Shown: positions 54,664 to 63,307 of the stretch, piece by piece
How positions within the stretch are numbered: position 1 is the first letter of the stretch
How the letters are laid out: every line of letters starts with the position of its first letter
Assembly (NCBI GenBank): GCA_019828565.1
Contig: JAHDYR010000038.1
Coordinates: forward strand, 574,735 to 638,734
DNA: 64,000 bases
Source: Carpediemonas membranifera BICM
Taxonomy: Eukaryota; Protista; Fornicata
Direction of reading: 5' to 3'
The notes under the pieces: generated by a model
The model's input: the letters and a program-made list of their open reading frames with translations, nothing else
Databases searched by the model: none
What the model was told of the DNA's origin: nothing
Program-made: the position numbers and the translations under genes

Positions 54664-55920
54664 TCAATCCACGGTCCGCCACCGGACCTCGTCGAACTCC
54701 TCCTCAAACCCGCGGGTCCCGTAGTATACCAGCTCATCCCTGACCATCGCCTCGGCAGTAGCAGGTGAGTCCTCGCCCTCGGCGTTCTTGATGGGAGCGA
54801 ACTCGTGCTCTCTGGCCACCATGATCACCCCGACCCGGTCAGCAAAAGTCAAGGAGTCAAAGATAAATTGCTCCAGCTTGTAGCCATTGGGAGTGGGCGG
54901 GTTGACAGTCTGTCCGGTCGCCTTGTCATAGTAGGGGATGGCCTTCTTGGCAATATGCCAGGGCAGCTGGTGAAGGGCGACCTTTTTGATGAACTCAACG
55001 GTAAACATGTGGTTCGCGATGTTACCGCATGAGAAGAGCAAATTCCCATCTTCATCCGTGGCCTCGCGGAGGTCCTGCGGCAGCTCGGAGTACTCGGCGA
55101 CCACCGTGCCAGTCCCGTTGCGGCAAATGACGCCAATCTTCTCCTCAGGGCCCCGCTTGGGAATAGCCTTCAGCGCCGCGTCGTATCCGTGAGTTACAAA
55201 CTGGCCGACGAGTTCTGGGTCGCATATACGTGTGAGTGGGTTATCAACGGTAAACACGTGGATGTACCTCACCCCGCGCCGCTCAATGTCAAGCCAGGCT
55301 GTCGATGTACCAGGGCCGTTGGGCCCGTTGAACAGAGCGGAGTAGAGCCCGCCGTTGCCGTCAGCTGCGGTGACGAGGCTGTCGGGACCAGACTTGAGCG
55401 GCTGATAGTCGAGATCAAAGCATGGCACCTCGCCCTGAGTGAAGAAGACCACCTGTGAGGGGTCGAGTCCGAAGAACGGCGAGTCTGTCCTACACGCCCC
55501 GGTCTCGAAGAACCGTCTCGTCTCGGCCTCGTTGTCCCTGCTGCACATGACATAGTAGGGGATCACACCGCGTGCCTTGCGCTGTAGAGCAAGGATGCGC
55601 ATGGCCTGGATCTGGAATATGGAGGGTGTGGTGTGCGCGACGCCGATGGTGAAGGTGCCCTTTGGCTTATTGCAGCCTAGCCTAGTCCCCATGCCACCGG
55701 CCATCACAACCGCGGCCACATGGCCTTCTTTGATCTCCTCAAGGCCAATTGTGTACTGTTTGTTGGCTACGGTCGAATAATTCACCGTGAGGAAGTCGTC
55801 GGAGGGGAAAGGCTGGTATTCAGCCATCTTCCCGGAATCAATACGATCGTGTTGTTGCCGGTGGATCAGTCTGGCATCAAGCTCGGCAATTGAACAATGT
55901 TCTTTTGCGAGCTCGTCCAT
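54664..55920 (-). CDS. UAP1: UDP-N-acetylglucosamine pyrophosphorylase
   Basis: MAGGMGTRLG..PKG, DGNGG, VDNPL, EYSEL, KLEQFIFD and EFAPIKNA motifs. Confidence 0.93.
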   Translation of the reverse strand: MDELAKEHCSIAELDARLIHRQQHDRIDSGKMAEYQPFPSDDFLTVNYSTVANKQYTIGLEEIKEGHVAAVVMAGGMGTRLGCNKPKGTFTIGVAHTTPSIFQIQAMRILALQRKARGVIPYYVMCSRDNEAETRRFFETGACRTDSPFFGLDPSQVVFFTQGEVPCFDLDYQPLKSGPDSLVTAADGNGGLYSALFNGPNGPGTSTAWLDIERRGVRYIHVFTVDNPLTRICDPELVGQFVTHGYDAALKAIPKRGPEEKIGVICRNGTGTVVAEYSELPQDLREATDEDGNLLFSCGNIANHMFTVEFIKKVALHQLPWHIAKKAIPYYDKATGQTVNPPTPNGYKLEQFIFDSLTFADRVGVIMVAREHEFAPIKNAEGEDSPATAEAMVRDELVYYGTRGFEEEFDEVRWRTVD

Positions 55921-56200: not shown

Positions 56201-59200
56201 ATGTCGCGTGACGACTTCATTTCGCCAACCACGATGAATAGCGGGGAACCGCCGGCTGTTGGCGCTAGTAAGCGACTAGCCACGCAATATAGTTCCATGC
56301 AAGATGAAGAAGAGCTTACAGAACTTGAGAAGGTTCTGGATGAAGCTGGCATCAGTCCGGCCAAGGTTTCGTCGGTAGCATCCACGCTGGAGCGTGACTT
56401 CGAGATCGAATCGAAAGAAGATCTTATTATCCTCCTTTCAGACGAGAAAGGTTACGAATCCATCGCCAGTTCGATCAAGAGGCTCAATACTGTCAAGCTC
56501 AGAAATGCCTTGCTTCCCAGCGTGCCGGAGAGGCCCCCCGAGGCCGCCGTCTCTGCCCCTCCCCAGAACAAACCCTCCACTCCTGTCTGGGAGCGGCTCG
56601 AGCGGCACAACCAGGGGCCCGAGCCCACGAAGCCCGATACCACGACCAAACACGCCGCACAGGGAAACAAGAAGAAGATGAAGAGTATACCCATCACATC
56701 CTCGAAACCAAAGGACACTACGCCCATTGTCGTCCCGATGTCCGAGGTCGACCGCAGGTTTGGACGCATTTACGCCGCTGCGGGCATCCTGCTGCTCAGG
56801 TCAACCCGGGCGTCAGGCCCACAAGCCATGTTCACAGTAGAGTATCGCCGGGCGAAGTGGCATCATACGGAGACGACCCACCTCCCGGGGGGGCAGAAGG
56901 AGATGAATGAGACGGTCAGAGACACCGCGGTTCGGGAGTTCTGGGAGGAAACGGACAAGGTGATCGCCCAGAGCGTCGTTCATGACGCCCTGGGCAACGC
57001 GGCGTGCCTGTACCTGCCTCAGGGCCGCTATGTCCTCTTCGTTGCCAAGATCTCGGCCACCTCTCCCCTGAATGACATTGTCAAACTATTCAACCAGCGT
57101 CGGTGGCACAACCTGGAGACCTCTGCCATCGGTTGGATGCCCGTCACCTGCTTGGGCCACAGCTTCAGAGGGAAGCCGCCGTCCGACTTTATGAAAAAGA
57201 TCATGAGTCACCTCCGGGTCCGGGAGATCATCAAAGACCCGCCCCAGCCTGTCGATGCCGTCAAGGCGCCATCTACGCTGCTCAAGAAGATCTTCAGTCG
57301 GGTTGACGCAATCCTCTCGAATCCCGAGAGACATCTCCTTCCCGCCGACTTTGACCAGGCGCTGAAGCCGATCGTAGTGAAGGTCAAGGGCCCCATCGAG
57401 CAGCTGGACCCGGCCAGCGCGCAGTATAAGGCTCTTGCTGTCCACGTATCCGGCCACCCCGTTGCCGGCATCCGTGTAGTGAACGTGCCAGCCCGGCAGG
57501 CAGCGTACAGCAACTCCAGCGGGACTGAGAAGAAGCCGCTGTTCCACGGCACGCCACACACTGCCAACGCCACTGCGATCAGTCTAGGCGGGTTCGACCT
57601 CTCAATCGTTACCAACGGGCGTGCCTTGGGCAATGGGGTGTATACTGCCGAGAACATAGCAACGCCAATGGGGTATGCTCGAGGGTCTGGCTCGATCCTG
57701 ATGTTATCCGGCAAGCTTGACGGCCAGACCAACAGCCAGGGCCGGGTGCATGTTTTCCCTGACCCCAACAAGGTGCTTCCGACAGCCATATTCGACTTCT
57801 CCACAGTCTATGATGCAGAGTCGAGGGAGCTTGCTGAACTAAGGAGACAGGCTGAGAGAGAAGAGGCTGAGTACGCCCACATCGTGGCCGAGGCGAGGGT
57901 GGCCAAAGGCCAGTTCATCGCCGACTGGTCTGCCGCCTACACCCGCCTCAAAACCCAGGCCCGCGAGCTCGAGGCCAGGCTCAGCGCTGTGAAGAGCGGA
58001 CCCGGCGGGGTGCCCGACTCGCTCGTCCTCGAAGTCCAGGCCGCTTATGCAGAGCTGGCCGTGTTGGACAACAGGATCCCGATATGTCTCCACAAGGACC
58101 GGATTCTCTCAGCCATTCGAGACAGCGACGTGCTCTTCGTGGAGGCAGCCACCGGCAGCGGTAAGAGCGTCATGCTATGCCAGTACGCCGCGGACAACCA
58201 AGACGCCATCGTTCCGGCCGACGCCCTGCCGTCCTCGTACGCTTCGCGGGTCTGCGTGCTTCAGCCGAAGAGGGCCAACGCGGAGAGCATTGCCCGCTAC
58301 GTCGCCCGGCTCAGGAACACAGTGCTGGGTGGTGAGGTCGGGCTGCACATGGGCGGGGGCGTTCATGTTGGCTCAGACGACACTCGGATCGACTTCATGA
58401 CCCACGGATACTTCTGTAATGCTGCGCAGGTGCGGGGTTTCCTCGGAAGCTACCACACAATCATTATTGACGAGGCGCACGAGAGGTCGGTGGACGTCGA
58501 GTTCTCACTCGCAATCATCACCCGTTACTTGCGCCAGATCGCTAAAGCCCGCGCTGACGATCAATCTGTCCCTCAACACCCGCTCAAGGTCGTGATTGCC
58601 TCTGCCACCCTCCCCGAGGCCGCCGCTTTCATGAACTCCATTATTCCGAGAGGTCATCTCAGCTCGCACCTTAAGGTCGGCTGTCTCACGGTATCCAACA
58701 GACCATTCCCGATATTCACCATGCCGAGGCCCCTGCCACTAACCGCTGACACTGCCGCGGGCCGAGGCCAGATCGCCCAGTCGGCGGAGGGCCAGTTCGT
58801 CCTGACCAGCGCGATTGTCTCAAATCTTTTAGTAGATCACGCCGTATCTATTGCGATCGAGGTTCTCCAGCGGTCACAGTCCGGCGACATCCTCGTCTTC
58901 CTCCCCCGAACACGAGACATCCGCTCAGCCCTGTTCTCAGCGTATAAGCACGGGGACGTTGCTGCCGGCTCCCAGCGGTACAACTCGTCGTTCGCTTTCA
59001 CATGCAGGATACGACCAAAGGCAAAGCATGGTGAGTCGGGTGCGAGGCATGAGAAAGAGCTCAAGAATGGCAAGAAGGTTGAGTTCCTGGAGTTCAGCGG
59101 GGGTCACACGTCGTCTGAGCGGCAGTACGTCCAGTCGCACCCCACCGACACTGCCGGCCGGCCCATACAGCGTGTGATCTTCACCACAAACGTCGCGGAA

Positions 59201-61825
59201 ACGGGCCTGACCTTCCCTGACCTGCGTTTCGTCATCGACTCTGGCCTGGAGAACGCGGTCGTGTATGACCATGCCGCAGACCTCCACTTCCACACTGTTG
59301 CGAAGAGCTCGCAGGCATCGCTTGAGCAGAGGAAGGGGAGGGCGGGGCGGGTGGCGGCGGGCACGTACATCCCGCTGTTCTCGGAGGAGGACCTCGCAAC
59401 CAGGCCAAAAGAGCGGCCGTCGGTCGCCGAGACGGGAGACCTGACGAACGTTATCCTGCGCCAACTAGTCCAGCCAGACCTCGTCCTCCGGGAACCGATC
59501 TCCGACGAGGTCCGCGGCGCTGTGCTCCGCCGCATGGCCGTGTTTGGTCTCCTGGCTGACCCCCAACCCAACACCGTCGGGTCCTTCGAGCTGACGGCTG
59601 CGGGGCAGTTTGTCGCCAGGTACGGCGGTCAGTTCAGGACCGCGCTCTTTATGTTCGCCTGCAACCAGGTCGGCGTGCCGCTCCAGCTGGCCAGCGCAGC
59701 CGCAGCTATCATCCAGAACAACAGTGCTGCTGAGAAGCTGCTCAGAGCTTTCTACGACCTCGTCGACATCAGTGGCCGCGCTGCGGCGGCGGAGAAGAAG
59801 GGCGACAAGACATACTTCGAGGCGACGGCTACTGGTCCAGGGTCGCGGTTCAGCAGGGAGCGGTCCAAGACGCTGCTGAGGTATCTAGACAGGGGGTCTG
59901 ATCATATCACGGCCGTGCGGCTGCTGCTGCTGTACTCGGAGGCCGTGGCCAGGGATGCCGATGTACAGGTTAGTGCCAGGACCGCGGGTCAGGGCAAGAT
60001 CTCCCAGCGCGAGCATGTGGTCGACCTGCTCGGCGTCGGCCAGGAGATCCTCGACGAGCTCCTAGACCTTATGAACGACAACCAGGCCAAGTGCTTCAAG
60101 CAGCGTCTGCTCGGAACCGCTGAGATCATCGACGCGCAGGTTAGGACTGAGGATGGTGAGGAGGGCGTTCCCGAGGAAGACGCGGCGGACGGAACAGGCG
60201 AGGAGGCCAAGCACGGCGCCAGGTTCAGGCCCGACCAGGCCCTCCCACCCTTTGTCCCCACCCCCGCCTCAAGCGCGCTGCTCAAGCGCGCCCTTATCCA
60301 GTCGCACGCAGACCATGTTGCTGTCCTCCTCCAGCCAGGAAAGGCCAACGAGGGCCTCTCCTGTGTACCCCTGCCGCAGCTGGGGGACCACACTGATTTG
60401 ATCGCAGCATTCCATGCCAGTGCCCCCAACGGCGGGGAAGACACTCAGGCCGACATCCACGGCCGGTCGATCACGGCTCAGGGCTCTGCGCCCTCCGACA
60501 CTGTGGCTGTATACTCTCAGATGATCAGCATCGACCGCAACGCCAGGCCGCGAGTGTCCATGCTGACCCTGTGCGATGTCAACGAGCTGGCAAACAGTGT
60601 CCCAGATTGGGCCAAGACGACTGTGACTCGGGTTCTTGAGTCGCACCGAGTCGCCAGGACTGTGGGCATCAGCAAGGCCAAGTTCCACGCCCTCGTCAGA
60701 GACAGCCACAGGCTGAGGCGCGACCTCGAGGCCAAGTTTGGGGTGAAAATCGACCTGGCTAGCAACGGCGGGGCGGCGACGCTGACACTGTATGCCCCTG
60801 AAAGCTACATCGCCGACGTAACCCGGCTAATCCAGACGCACATCGGGCGTGAGTTGGCCGAGGTTGAGGTCAAGTTCCGGCTGGTGCCTGGGGCTGGGAA
60901 GAACGAGGGCTTCAGGACCGCTCGGGGCAAGCTGGTCGACCCGATAGAGCAAATCATCGCGGACGCCACAAACTCTCAGTCTGGCGAGCACTGCGTGTCG
61001 GTCAGCACGCGAGACAACCATCTAATGGTCAAGCTCTCCGGGGTGGGTATCCAGGCCTCGCCGATGGTCACCGCGTTCGTCAACAACATGATGGAGAAGT
61101 GGCTAGCTGAGACAGGGACGCCAGCAAGCAGAGATTCCCAGGCGATGGAGGACGCCAACCACTATCTCCCTAACCTCGTCATGATCACTTCAAAACAGCA
61201 GCCGCAGACCTCTAATCCGATGGTACAAGTAGCCCATGCCATAATCTGGGGAGGGTTCAAGATTTACGGTGGATTTGTAAGGGATCATGTAATTCGTAAC
61301 GAGCGGGCAAACGACATTGACACAGTGGCGCCTAAGGGAATGGACGCCCGCGCGGCATCCCAGCAGCTGTGTCAGATCATGGCAGGCCTGGGCTATCGCC
61401 AGAATGGCTCTCCCAAGTTCTACAACGCAGTCAAGATGCAGTTCCAGCGTGGCGGGACCGTGATCGACATCGACGTCACCGAGGACACCCTCCTCGGCGC
61501 CTACCCCTTCGTCGACTGCGACGTGGGTAACTTTACCGTGAGTTCGACTGGACTCGGGCTGAAGCGGGTCTGGGCGGGCGAGAATGACTGCTCTGTGGCC
61601 TCGGCGATCGCCCACTGCCGCGCCAAGCAGTTCGTGTTCTTCTGTCAGCCGAACAACTTCTCCCGTATGCACGCTAAGTACTTTGGGAGGGGCTGGACGT
61701 GTGTCAATAACTTCCCGGCCAGCGTCCTGCAGCAGTTTAAGCCTCAGCACGACCTGTATATGCCGGATAAGGCGTTTTCAAGGGATTACTCAATCCAGCC
61801 GCCTGGATGGCAACCCACGATGTAA
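56201..61825 (+). CDS. Multidomain protein: SAM-like + NUDIX + PARP-type ART + DEAH-box helicase + KH-like + class II nucleotidyltransferase
   Basis: NUDIX box GGQKEMNETVRDTAVREFWEETD (~56890). ART motifs LFHGT..GFD..GNGVY..GYA (~57540). Helicase motifs ATGSGKS, DEAHERS, SAT, LVFLP, TNVAETGLT and QRKGRAGR (58145-59350). NTase motif YGGFVRD..DID..IDV (~61265). The ORF's upstream extension overlaps UAP1, so ATG 56201 is preferred. Confidence 0.88.
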   Translation: MSRDDFISPTTMNSGEPPAVGASKRLATQYSSMQDEEELTELEKVLDEAGISPAKVSSVASTLERDFEIESKEDLIILLSDEKGYESIASSIKRLNTVKLRNALLPSVPERPPEAAVSAPPQNKPSTPVWERLERHNQGPEPTKPDTTTKHAAQGNKKKMKSIPITSSKPKDTTPIVVPMSEVDRRFGRIYAAAGILLLRSTRASGPQAMFTVEYRRAKWHHTETTHLPGGQKEMNETVRDTAVREFWEETDKVIAQSVVHDALGNAACLYLPQGRYVLFVAKISATSPLNDIVKLFNQRRWHNLETSAIGWMPVTCLGHSFRGKPPSDFMKKIMSHLRVREIIKDPPQPVDAVKAPSTLLKKIFSRVDAILSNPERHLLPADFDQALKPIVVKVKGPIEQLDPASAQYKALAVHVSGHPVAGIRVVNVPARQAAYSNSSGTEKKPLFHGTPHTANATAISLGGFDLSIVTNGRALGNGVYTAENIATPMGYARGSGSILMLSGKLDGQTNSQGRVHVFPDPNKVLPTAIFDFSTVYDAESRELAELRRQAEREEAEYAHIVAEARVAKGQFIADWSAAYTRLKTQARELEARLSAVKSGPGGVPDSLVLEVQAAYAELAVLDNRIPICLHKDRILSAIRDSDVLFVEAATGSGKSVMLCQYAADNQDAIVPADALPSSYASRVCVLQPKRANAESIARYVARLRNTVLGGEVGLHMGGGVHVGSDDTRIDFMTHGYFCNAAQVRGFLGSYHTIIIDEAHERSVDVEFSLAIITRYLRQIAKARADDQSVPQHPLKVVIASATLPEAAAFMNSIIPRGHLSSHLKVGCLTVSNRPFPIFTMPRPLPLTADTAAGRGQIAQSAEGQFVLTSAIVSNLLVDHAVSIAIEVLQRSQSGDILVFLPRTRDIRSALFSAYKHGDVAAGSQRYNSSFAFTCRIRPKAKHGESGARHEKELKNGKKVEFLEFSGGHTSSERQYVQSHPTDTAGRPIQRVIFTTNVAETGLTFPDLRFVIDSGLENAVVYDHAADLHFHTVAKSSQASLEQRKGRAGRVAAGTYIPLFSEEDLATRPKERPSVAETGDLTNVILRQLVQPDLVLREPISDEVRGAVLRRMAVFGLLADPQPNTVGSFELTAAGQFVARYGGQFRTALFMFACNQVGVPLQLASAAAAIIQNNSAAEKLLRAFYDLVDISGRAAAAEKKGDKTYFEATATGPGSRFSRERSKTLLRYLDRGSDHITAVRLLLLYSEAVARDADVQVSARTAGQGKISQREHVVDLLGVGQEILDELLDLMNDNQAKCFKQRLLGTAEIIDAQVRTEDGEEGVPEEDAADGTGEEAKHGARFRPDQALPPFVPTPASSALLKRALIQSHADHVAVLLQPGKANEGLSCVPLPQLGDHTDLIAAFHASAPNGGEDTQADIHGRSITAQGSAPSDTVAVYSQMISIDRNARPRVSMLTLCDVNELANSVPDWAKTTVTRVLESHRVARTVGISKAKFHALVRDSHRLRRDLEAKFGVKIDLASNGGAATLTLYAPESYIADVTRLIQTHIGRELAEVEVKFRLVPGAGKNEGFRTARGKLVDPIEQIIADATNSQSGEHCVSVSTRDNHLMVKLSGVGIQASPMVTAFVNNMMEKWLAETGTPASRDSQAMEDANHYLPNLVMITSKQQPQTSNPMVQVAHAIIWGGFKIYGGFVRDHVIRNERANDIDTVAPKGMDARAASQQLCQIMAGLGYRQNGSPKFYNAVKMQFQRGGTVIDIDVTEDTLLGAYPFVDCDVGNFTVSSTGLGLKRVWAGENDCSVASAIAHCRAKQFVFFCQPNNFSRMHAKYFGRGWTCVNNFPASVLQQFKPQHDLYMPDKAFSRDYSIQPPGWQPTM

Positions 61826-62272
61826 ATACGATATGTAAAGGTAAGACACGGATAAACCGTAAAGCTCATATAAATGCCTGTAAACCCATTAAATACGTAA
61901 ATGAGAATGGCAGGCAAGGGTCGACCGGGAGTGATGAGACGTTACAGCAACCGTCGTCGCCGGTCTTCAGCTTCACATCGTCGGAGAGTCCATGCGTTGA
62001 TTACTCGCTCAGCCTGCAACCATTCTGTCTGAGCTGGAGTCCGCTGGGTCCTGTCGTTGGCGGTCATCGTGCGAGGTTCTGTGAGATCGTCAAGAAGAGA
62101 CTCAGTTTCACGCTGAACCACGTCTACCAGTCCAACAGCAGCAATATGCTGCCATGGACGTGCTGGTGAGACTGCATTCTGGCCAAGGAGTTCTTTGTCA
62201 TGCGGGCAGACTTGTGAACCGTAACGGATGGTGCCCGAACAACGTAACACACCGACCGATCGTATATGATGT

Positions 62273-63307
62273 ATGTATGGACACCACATTCGCCTCTGCG
62301 ACACAATGCCAACTCTGCGAGAGTCGCCCCACTTCGGGCAGTTCTACGTTGCGGAGTGCGAAAACCATGGTCTCGTAGAACGAAAGAAACAACTGATGAA
62401 CGGCACAGCATCTCGCTTTGCAGACCATAACTGCCCAAAGAACGTGTGGACAATCTTCTCATCGACCACCCAGCCGATTGTGGCGAAGTTTCCTCAAAAG
62501 CCCCTCGAGGAGGTGGTTGCTGCCGAGTTCTTGACCCGATTCGGCTTCCAGAAACTCATTTATCACGTCCACGGAGCTGCCAGCGAACAAGCTGCGCGAA
62601 TCCGCTCGATTATTGGCTTCGGCGTCCCCCGCCGCGCGACGCTCATCATGCCCTACATCCAGGGTCTCTCTCTAGCAGCGTACAATCACTCAGGCATCAT
62701 ATACGAAGCAGAGCAGCTCGGCGCCCTTGCCATCTGCGACTGTATCCTCAACAACTGCGACCGACTTTCCGTGCTCGTCGACCATGCCGGTAACTATCTC
62801 AATATCATTGGGGTCGGCCACAAGCTGGTCCCCATCGACAATCACCTCATTATTCCCGCTGAGTCAGCTGAGCCTGTGTTCCAGCGGCGACTGCTCTCTC
62901 TCGTTGAGGATGTTTTATCCGACGGCGGGCTGACTGACGCGTCCACGTCCTCCCGGCCACTCAAGCCGACAGAGCTCTCGCCCCCAAACCACCCGATAGG
63001 CCAGCTAGTAGCATCCGTCAGCCAGTTCTTCGCCGCACCGCCCAATGAGATCGAAGCCGCCATCCGCCGAGGAGCCCGCTCAGCCTTGGACACTTTCAGG
63101 CACATGCAGGTTGGTGACTTCAAGCGACTCGAGATGGACGTGCTTCGACTTGTGGGACACACGTCGTTTGCTGGCGAGGACCTTGGCTCTCTCCTCGGCC
63201 AGCTCAGGAAGGCCCATGGCGTGGTGCGGGCGGCGAGAGACCGGGTTGGTGGGTATGACGTGAGAGAGGTTGATGTATTGCTGGAGGCGGCGATGGCGAT
63301 GGCCTGA
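62273..63307 (+). CDS. Atypical kinase, actin-fragmin kinase / PI3-4K-like catalytic domain
   Basis: IVAK, LIMPYIQG, DCILNNCDRL, GNYLNII and VPIDN motifs. Confidence 0.7.
   Translation: MYGHHIRLCDTMPTLRESPHFGQFYVAECENHGLVERKKQLMNGTASRFADHNCPKNVWTIFSSTTQPIVAKFPQKPLEEVVAAEFLTRFGFQKLIYHVHGAASEQAARIRSIIGFGVPRRATLIMPYIQGLSLAAYNHSGIIYEAEQLGALAICDCILNNCDRLSVLVDHAGNYLNIIGVGHKLVPIDNHLIIPAESAEPVFQRRLLSLVEDVLSDGGLTDASTSSRPLKPTELSPPNHPIGQLVASVSQFFAAPPNEIEAAIRRGARSALDTFRHMQVGDFKRLEMDVLRLVGHTSFAGEDLGSLLGQLRKAHGVVRAARDRVGGYDVREVDVLLEAAMAMA

Follow-up and report, generated by a model that had tools for sequence, protein, structure and literature searches.

Carpediemonas membranifera encodes, in a single reading frame, a Nudix hydrolase, a PARP-fold ADP-ribosyltransferase (ART), a DEAH helicase, KH-like domains and a C-terminal nucleotidyltransferase (NTase). 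Because this layout, here called type A, recurs in distant protists and often lies beside partner genes of the same family, it suggests a so far undescribed protist RNA-surveillance system, probably antiviral. To our knowledge, the antiviral defence of protists is poorly known; type A is a specific, conserved candidate system in which each chain carries four enzymes open to testing, and its partner genes were identified by gene clustering, which is rare in eukaryotes. The initial annotation had named no characterised protein with this combination, and our full-text literature search, whose coverage of key comparative work was incomplete, gave no description of the architecture either.

The gene lies in a window of 64,000 nucleotides from a 24.24-Mb assembly of 69 contigs. 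Its ORF (Table 1) encodes 1874 aa from the ATG at 56201 with zero internal stops, in keeping with the uninterrupted ~1875-aa frame first proposed, and sits in a stop-free plus-strand frame that spans 55781 to the TAA at 61823-61825. In the public annotation, the protein begins at Met33 (P0001, 1842 aa). We rejected a longer ORF from a GTG at 55787, which overlaps the opposite-strand neighbour; GTG starts are a table-11 artefact. The GC3 of the ORF (0.75) is similar to that of the adjoining genes. Four contigs from a public run matched 56722-61830 with zero mismatches; the gaps between them fall within domains, and all junctions from Nudix to NTase are bridged. Positions 56201-56721 had no contig coverage and none of the contigs or long reads spans the full ORF, as might be seen if the frame were an assembly artefact or a chance read-through across several genes. 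Such an origin is extremely improbable: the contigs bridge the domain junctions without differences, at least 20 unrelated proteins share the domain order, and two contigs of 6.2-6.3 kb (L037 and L039) each hold one full-length type A frame. The homologue architecture excludes an artefact. The final contig stops 5 bases past the stop codon, and depth climbs toward the 3' end in a transcript-like manner. Because the RNA nature of this run is a guess and the two runs are one data set, transcription of the ORF is suggested rather than shown. Directly downstream, a 344-aa atypical kinase-like ORF (62273-63307, + strand) has actin-fragmin/PI3K-like motifs by eye, with no Pfam match and no sign of belonging to the type A system.

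The protein begins with a tentative SAM-like segment that shares 35% identity with the N-terminus of the homologue P0047; Atlas SAM rows score only 0.77-0.82, and hhalign gives 4%. Many homologues carry a Macro domain between this segment and the Nudix domain, which is absent from the Carpediemonas protein. A full Nudix box had been claimed, and a Pfam match (aa 216-258, E 3e-6, over the cut-off) bore it out. The box fits GX5EX7REUXEEXGU except that the last Gly is Asp, and its G, R and EFxEE are kept across 18 homologues. By profile comparison, MTH1, DIPP, ADPRase and viral g5R/D9 all matched at similar weak scores, and no substrate class stood out. The H..Y..Y signature claimed for the ART is likewise present, and 22 homologues keep H449, Y481 and Y492 without exception. 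V516 occupies the Glu position of PARP1 and aligns with the Ile of PARP12; this column is Val, Ile, Met or Trp throughout the homologues, a feature that sets them apart from poly-ADP-ribosylating PARPs. Searched as a piece, the domain gave a Pfam PARP match (PF00644, aa 423-499) of E 6e-5, under the cut-off, and the best PDB matches of its profile were PARP12 (E 4e-9), PARP14 (E 1e-6), PARP10, tankyrase and ZAP. Given Val516 in place of Glu, and PARP12 and PARP14 as the nearest solved matches, we assign the internal ART by sequence to the mono-ART type (H449-Y481-V516), as originally supposed. The predicted coiled-coil linker that follows is the least conserved segment (15% mean identity).

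All of the DEAH motifs reported for the helicase were located (GSGKS 652-656, DEAH 757-760, SAT 801-803, QRKGRAGR 1043-1050) and are invariant among type A homologues; Pfam (DEAD, aa 636-807; Helicase_C, aa 951-1051) and PDB matches to HrpA and Prp43 (E 1e-31 to 1e-24) agree. HA2 was matched by Pfam in the homologues P0008 and P0013, and not in the Carpediemonas protein. The HA2/OB region has a conserved GDHxT motif, and the OB fold, placed by position only, is probable. Of the KH-like segments proposed earlier, the domain assignment stood through the homologues, since KH_1 is over the cut-off in the aligned region of P0044 and P0047; the GxxG loops are present in homologues but degenerate in this copy. 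The region also gave a vigilin KH match at E 0.3. A single-sequence AF2 prediction of aa 1401-1874 (pLDDT 35) was unusable.

On the evidence of its model, the C-terminal domain belongs to the Pol-beta superfamily and has a class II-like head, with GGFVRD at 1690-1695, D1705 and D1707, a third acid at D1758, and N1777. A search with aa 1641-1874 returned 126 matches among 1.84 billion representative proteins, the one search from which we judged the family absent from prokaryotes. In a 77-row alignment, G1690, R1694, D1695 and N1777 are invariant and the metal-binding Asp residues are kept in 76, 76 and 72 rows. The AF2 model (pLDDT 94.3, pTM 0.89) matched class II CCA/A-adding enzymes and bacterial poly(A) polymerase (PAP) by Foldseek (E 6e-5) and their head and neck by VIA (Z 9.3-9.5; Z 9.5 over 164 residues). 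Alignment, model and fold searches agree on the GGFVRD..DID head first noticed in the sequence. Pfam left the NTase region of the Carpediemonas protein unmatched, below the PF01743 cut-off. The label CCA/poly(A)-type, by contrast, holds for the fold and not for the specificity: the motif B/D positions read xVDCD(V)GN and xRLxKY instead of RRD/EDxxR, and the body and tail are missing, the protein ending ~100 aa past N1777 and the model aligning over head and neck only. We rejected a housekeeping CCA role, because RRD/EDxxR are lacking and canonical CCA enzymes are separate genes in this genome. There are two near-identical, intron-containing genes of this canonical kind (G000:C2:214k and C6:407k; L031 and L032), and they keep RRD and DDPLR.

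The nearest relatives of the NTase are phage Gad2-like and giant-virus NTases. Gad2-like phage clusters scored 0.96 in the Atlas (188/256 features), phrog_1614 was matched by 50 of the 77 family members, and uncharacterised Mimiviridae and pithovirus proteins were found among viral structures (BFVD, E 4e-8); TM values against Gad2-like and giant-virus NTases were 0.54-0.64 (0.54 for Gad2-like phage). Gad2 is a phage anti-Gabija (anti-defence) protein, predicted to contain an NTase domain (bioRxiv 10.1101/2023.05.01.538930). The NTase family, which has no Pfam match of its own, connects host proteins with enzymes of giant viruses and of phage anti-defence. Because the NTase-only tree is mostly unresolved, we claim no donor or direction of transfer. 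Our scan of viral contigs gave one weak giant-virus NTase and no close copy; on the giant-virus contig L081 (4596-7196, + strand), a distant NTase with a similar head motif occupies an 867-codon frame. In the ESM Atlas, a similar NTase fold (TM 0.70) occurs in rotifer clusters of PARP and PARP-helicase proteins, and the family may reach animals.

The initial annotation had called for a search for the same architecture elsewhere, and we found at least 20 homologues with ART-DEAH-NTase, most with Nudix as well, and no close viral copy. Domain order is kept at ~25% identity, and nine homologues add Macro domains in front. The named sources are Kipferlia, Eukaryota sp. TZLM1-RC and TZLM3-RCL (which we take to be skoliomonad metamonads), Ochromonas danica, Pedospumella, Aphanomyces stellatus and Choanoeca perplexa. 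Type A is conserved across supergroups, with a wide but patchy distribution over metamonads, chrysophytes, an oomycete, a choanoflagellate and metagenomes; its descent within metamonads is apparently vertical (tree support 86/90). A word-index homology search returned only the protein itself, one chrysophyte protein and HrpA-like helicases, a blank that the limits of the method explain.

A second family, type B, ends in the same NTase and reads La/RRM-DEAH-KH-RING/IBR-ART-WWE-WWE-NTase. In a helicase tree, types A and B form separate clades, each with 100/100 support. Carpediemonas has one copy of each; its type B paralogue (2551 aa, La-DEAH-RING-ART-WWE-WWE-NTase) is on contig C6 (L009:1589-9244, + strand), and further type B genes occur in Pedospumella, Lagenidium, Aphanomyces, Paulinella, Chilomastix and TZLM1-RC. 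The C6 gene is followed directly by retroelement ORFs that have a tyrosine recombinase and an integrase (L011). Shorter NTase carriers combine the domain with PARG and WWE, many WWE, ART and UIM, kinase and ART, RING, RRM, CSD or LRR, bringing the partner domains overall to Macro, WWE, PARG, ART, RING, UIM, RRM, CSD, LRR and kinase.

A family gene adjoins type A in 6 of the 11 loci with flanking DNA, on five type A branches (Table 1). We counted as family genes type B, PARG-WWE-NTase, WWE-NTase, ART-NTase-UIM, and a stand-alone NTase or degenerate type A; branches were counted on a quick tree, and several flanks are short. At locus L019, three adjacent genes share the same C-terminal NTase, and the two partner NTases are nearly identical at their ends; a further large exonuclease-helicase gene follows them. 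The degenerate copy at L015 (5544-9887, - strand) is head-to-head with P0061, which has lost its Nudix. The degenerate copy has a different Nudix, an ART and helicase without catalytic motifs, a KH and no NTase. In Pedospumella, the type A and type B genes are numbered consecutively. As a rough estimate, the chance of adjacency in five of ten loci is below 1e-7, but tandem duplication of the NTase module could itself create neighbours. Since types A and B are old separate clades and yet are adjacent in a metamonad and in chrysophyte-like genomes, their adjacency points to an old linkage. They are unlinked in Carpediemonas, TZLM1-RC, Aphanomyces and Lagenidium, and no partner gene was found near the Carpediemonas type A locus or the C6 paralogue. 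We rejected a reading of L035 as a type B split into two genes, its RBR helicase falling outside the type B clade.

Table 1. Features of the Carpediemonas type A gene (window coordinates) and arrangement of family genes at other loci.
Feature	Location	Strand	Basis or remark
Whole ORF (type A architecture)	56201..61825	+	Alternative starts Met12 (56234), Met33 (56297)
Tentative SAM-like helical domain, aa ~38-105	56312..56515	+	Resemblance to P0047 N-terminus
Nudix hydrolase, box aa 231-252 (56891-56956)	56753..57220	+	PF00293 over cut-off
PARP-fold ART without catalytic Glu	57383..57805	+	PF00644, PARP12 match, H449/Y481/Y492/V516
Predicted coiled-coil linker	57818..58066	+	Sequence
DEAH/RHA helicase RecA1+RecA2, motifs I, Ia, Ib, II, III, IV, V, VI	58073..59425	+	Pfam, PDB
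Winged-helix/ratchet (HA2) and probable OB with acidic insertion	59426..60610	+	Homologues; GDHxT
Two degenerate KH-like domains	60632..61105	+	KH_1 in homologues
Minimal class II-like NTase, head and short neck	61163..61795	+	AF2, fold search, 126 homologues
Type B head-to-head with type A	L012		
Type B tail-to-tail with type A	L014		Type B without NTase
Type B head-to-head with type A	L019		TZLM3-RCL, GCA_040285805.1; PARG-WWE-NTase just downstream
WWE-NTase head-to-head with type A	L020		88 bp
ART-NTase-UIM beside type A	L035		Then RBR-DEAH helicase
Degenerate type A copy beside type A P0061	L015		Then stand-alone NTase
Stand-alone NTase	L015:4302-5489	+	

Compared with known systems, type A is a true DEAH helicase, Nudix protein and mono-ART, and it falls outside the macro-PARPs, CCA/PAP enzymes and RBR helicases. 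By analogy, it would work most like the animal PARP12/14-DTX3L set. It shares the H-Y-hydrophobic ART with PARP12, PARP13/ZAP, PARP14 and PARP9-DTX3L, and the KH, Macro, WWE, RRM and RING modules of these antiviral mono-ARTs recur across the type A/B pair. Unlike them, type A is found in protists, has clustered partner genes, combines its ART in a single chain with a DEAH motor, a Nudix and an NTase, places the ART before the helicase instead of at the C-terminus, and has no CCCH fingers. The Carpediemonas protein also lacks Macro and WWE domains, and with its internal ART falls outside the macro-PARPs and ZAP-like PARPs. With class II tRNA nucleotidyltransferases and bacterial PAP, the NTase shares the head and neck fold, GGxVRD, and DxD plus a third acid, but it has no RRD, EDxxR or body and tail, and identity is 10-15%. 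Its similarity to Gad2 (PF26128) is visible only in Atlas features and structure. Gad2 and the giant-virus DUF5769-like minimal NTases are for the most part free-standing viral proteins, whereas the type A NTase forms the C-terminal part of large host proteins. Plant-type RBR-DEAH helicases (DEAH11/12) have in common with type A the predicted DEAH-OB-KH layout, to which type B adds a RING/IBR likeness; type A has no RING/IBR and no Cys-rich region. The canonical RBR helicase that adjoins the type A cluster at L035 lies outside both clades.

The domain set and order, the intact catalytic motifs in all four enzymes and the clustering with same-NTase partners are established. From these sequence features, we read type A as a putative cytoplasmic RNA-surveillance protein, an RNA-triggered ADP-ribosylation/nucleotidylation conflict machine that is most likely antiviral, and we give this reading a probability of roughly 0.5. 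The KH domains and DEAH motor would bind a target (foreign or aberrant) RNA or RNP and move 3'->5'. The NTase would add one or a few nucleotides to the RNA 3'-OH, both a mark and a loading tail for the motor, and the H-Y-V ART would mono-ADP-ribosylate RNA phosphate ends, as PARP10/11/15 do on RNA ends, or bound proteins. The Nudix, with the Macro domain of many homologues, could trim ADP-ribose or caps and so make the mark reversible or edited. The type B partner would read the mark via tandem WWE and couple it to ubiquitin via RING/IBR, with the PARG-WWE-NTase and ART-NTase-UIM genes as further modules. In humans, phosphorylated RNA ends are modified by PARP10/11/15, and the resulting mark is taken off by Macro, PARG and NUDT16 (PMC6582358), which makes the ADP-ribosylation chemistry plausible.

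The PARP12/14-like ART, the viral conflict-type kin of the NTase, the patchy spread and the gene clusters speak for the RNA-surveillance or immunity role that the initial annotation had proposed. Domains gained and lost, together with degenerate copies (L015, P0061, P0013), are in keeping with a conflict system. Against one stand the single copies in Carpediemonas, without the expansion typical of immune genes, and the unlinked A and B genes of several genomes. The proposal that the machine is self-contained is probably wrong, for type A usually adjoins a WWE/RING partner bearing the same NTase or occurs with one in the same genome. More tentatively, these genes might form an ancient, clustered multi-gene innate immunity of microbial eukaryotes, in which an RNA helicase sensor triggers a new nucleotide mark: mono-ADP-ribose that is extended or rewritten by a Gad2/giant-virus-type NTase, read by WWE, coupled to ubiquitin by RING/IBR and erased by Macro, PARG and Nudix from within the cluster.

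The degenerate KH GxxG loops of the Carpediemonas copy also speak against the surveillance reading. We only infer the RNA 3' end as acceptor, because the CCA RRD motif and the body and tail are gone from the NTase; some NTase carriers (PARG-WWE-NTase, ART-NTase-UIM) have no RNA-binding domain that we could see. Within the same conflict role, the NTase might instead act on ADP-ribose, NAD+ or protein, a possibility that we hold with low confidence. It could transfer an NMP onto a ribose hydroxyl of ADP-ribose, re-adenylate the phosphoribose left by Nudix, or AMPylate protein; the composite mark or signal would be read by WWE, and the helicase would be an RNA sensor that switches the NTase on. 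In favour of this reading, OAS-type NTases can adenylate NAD+ and ADP-ribose, and WWE recognises iso-ADP-ribose, a product that a mono-ART is unable to form. Nearly all recognisable NTase architectures, including some without RNA-binding domains, join the domain to PARG, WWE, ART, Macro/Nudix or UIM, and rotifer PARP clusters carry a similar fold. The missing CCA motifs are those that specify ribose and base, and Gad2, which is the closest relative with a name, acts enzymatically in some way to inhibit a protein complex. On the other hand, the best solved folds for the NTase are all RNA-3'-end enzymes, types A and B place it in one chain with DEAH, KH, La or RRM, and RRM or CSD is present in other carriers. 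The NTase is so regularly paired with domains that read or erase ADP-ribose that activity towards ADP-ribose or protein is about as open as the decapping or tailing first proposed. Activity on ADP-ribose would be new chemistry; tailing of RNA would bring ADP-ribosylation and ubiquitination together with tailing in a single pathway, with implications for how animal PARP12/14-DTX3L immunity arose.

Type A might also serve housekeeping RNA repair or quality control, with Nudix, ART and Macro cleaning blocked RNA ends by a Tpt1-like logic, the NTase restoring lost 3' nucleotides, the helicase freeing RNA from stalled RNPs and RING partners removing stuck proteins. Single copies with all motifs intact and apparently vertical descent within metamonads would suit such an enzyme, and phage repair systems, in which NTases restore RNA ends beside ligases (PMC7824862; PMC9503650), offer a precedent. 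We nevertheless regard this role as unlikely: with only those 126 representatives the family is absent from most sequenced eukaryotes, the ART is PARP12-like and not Tpt1-like, the genome already encodes canonical CCA enzymes as well as numerous further DEAH helicases, and no ligase or nuclease was found among the neighbours.

We also noted four microbial-type PARG domains in Carpediemonas (G000:C68:261557, C26:717053, C67:581228 and C68:583473), which are possible erasers. None is joined to the type A/B NTase, and two lie in long frames (1991 and 1518 aa).
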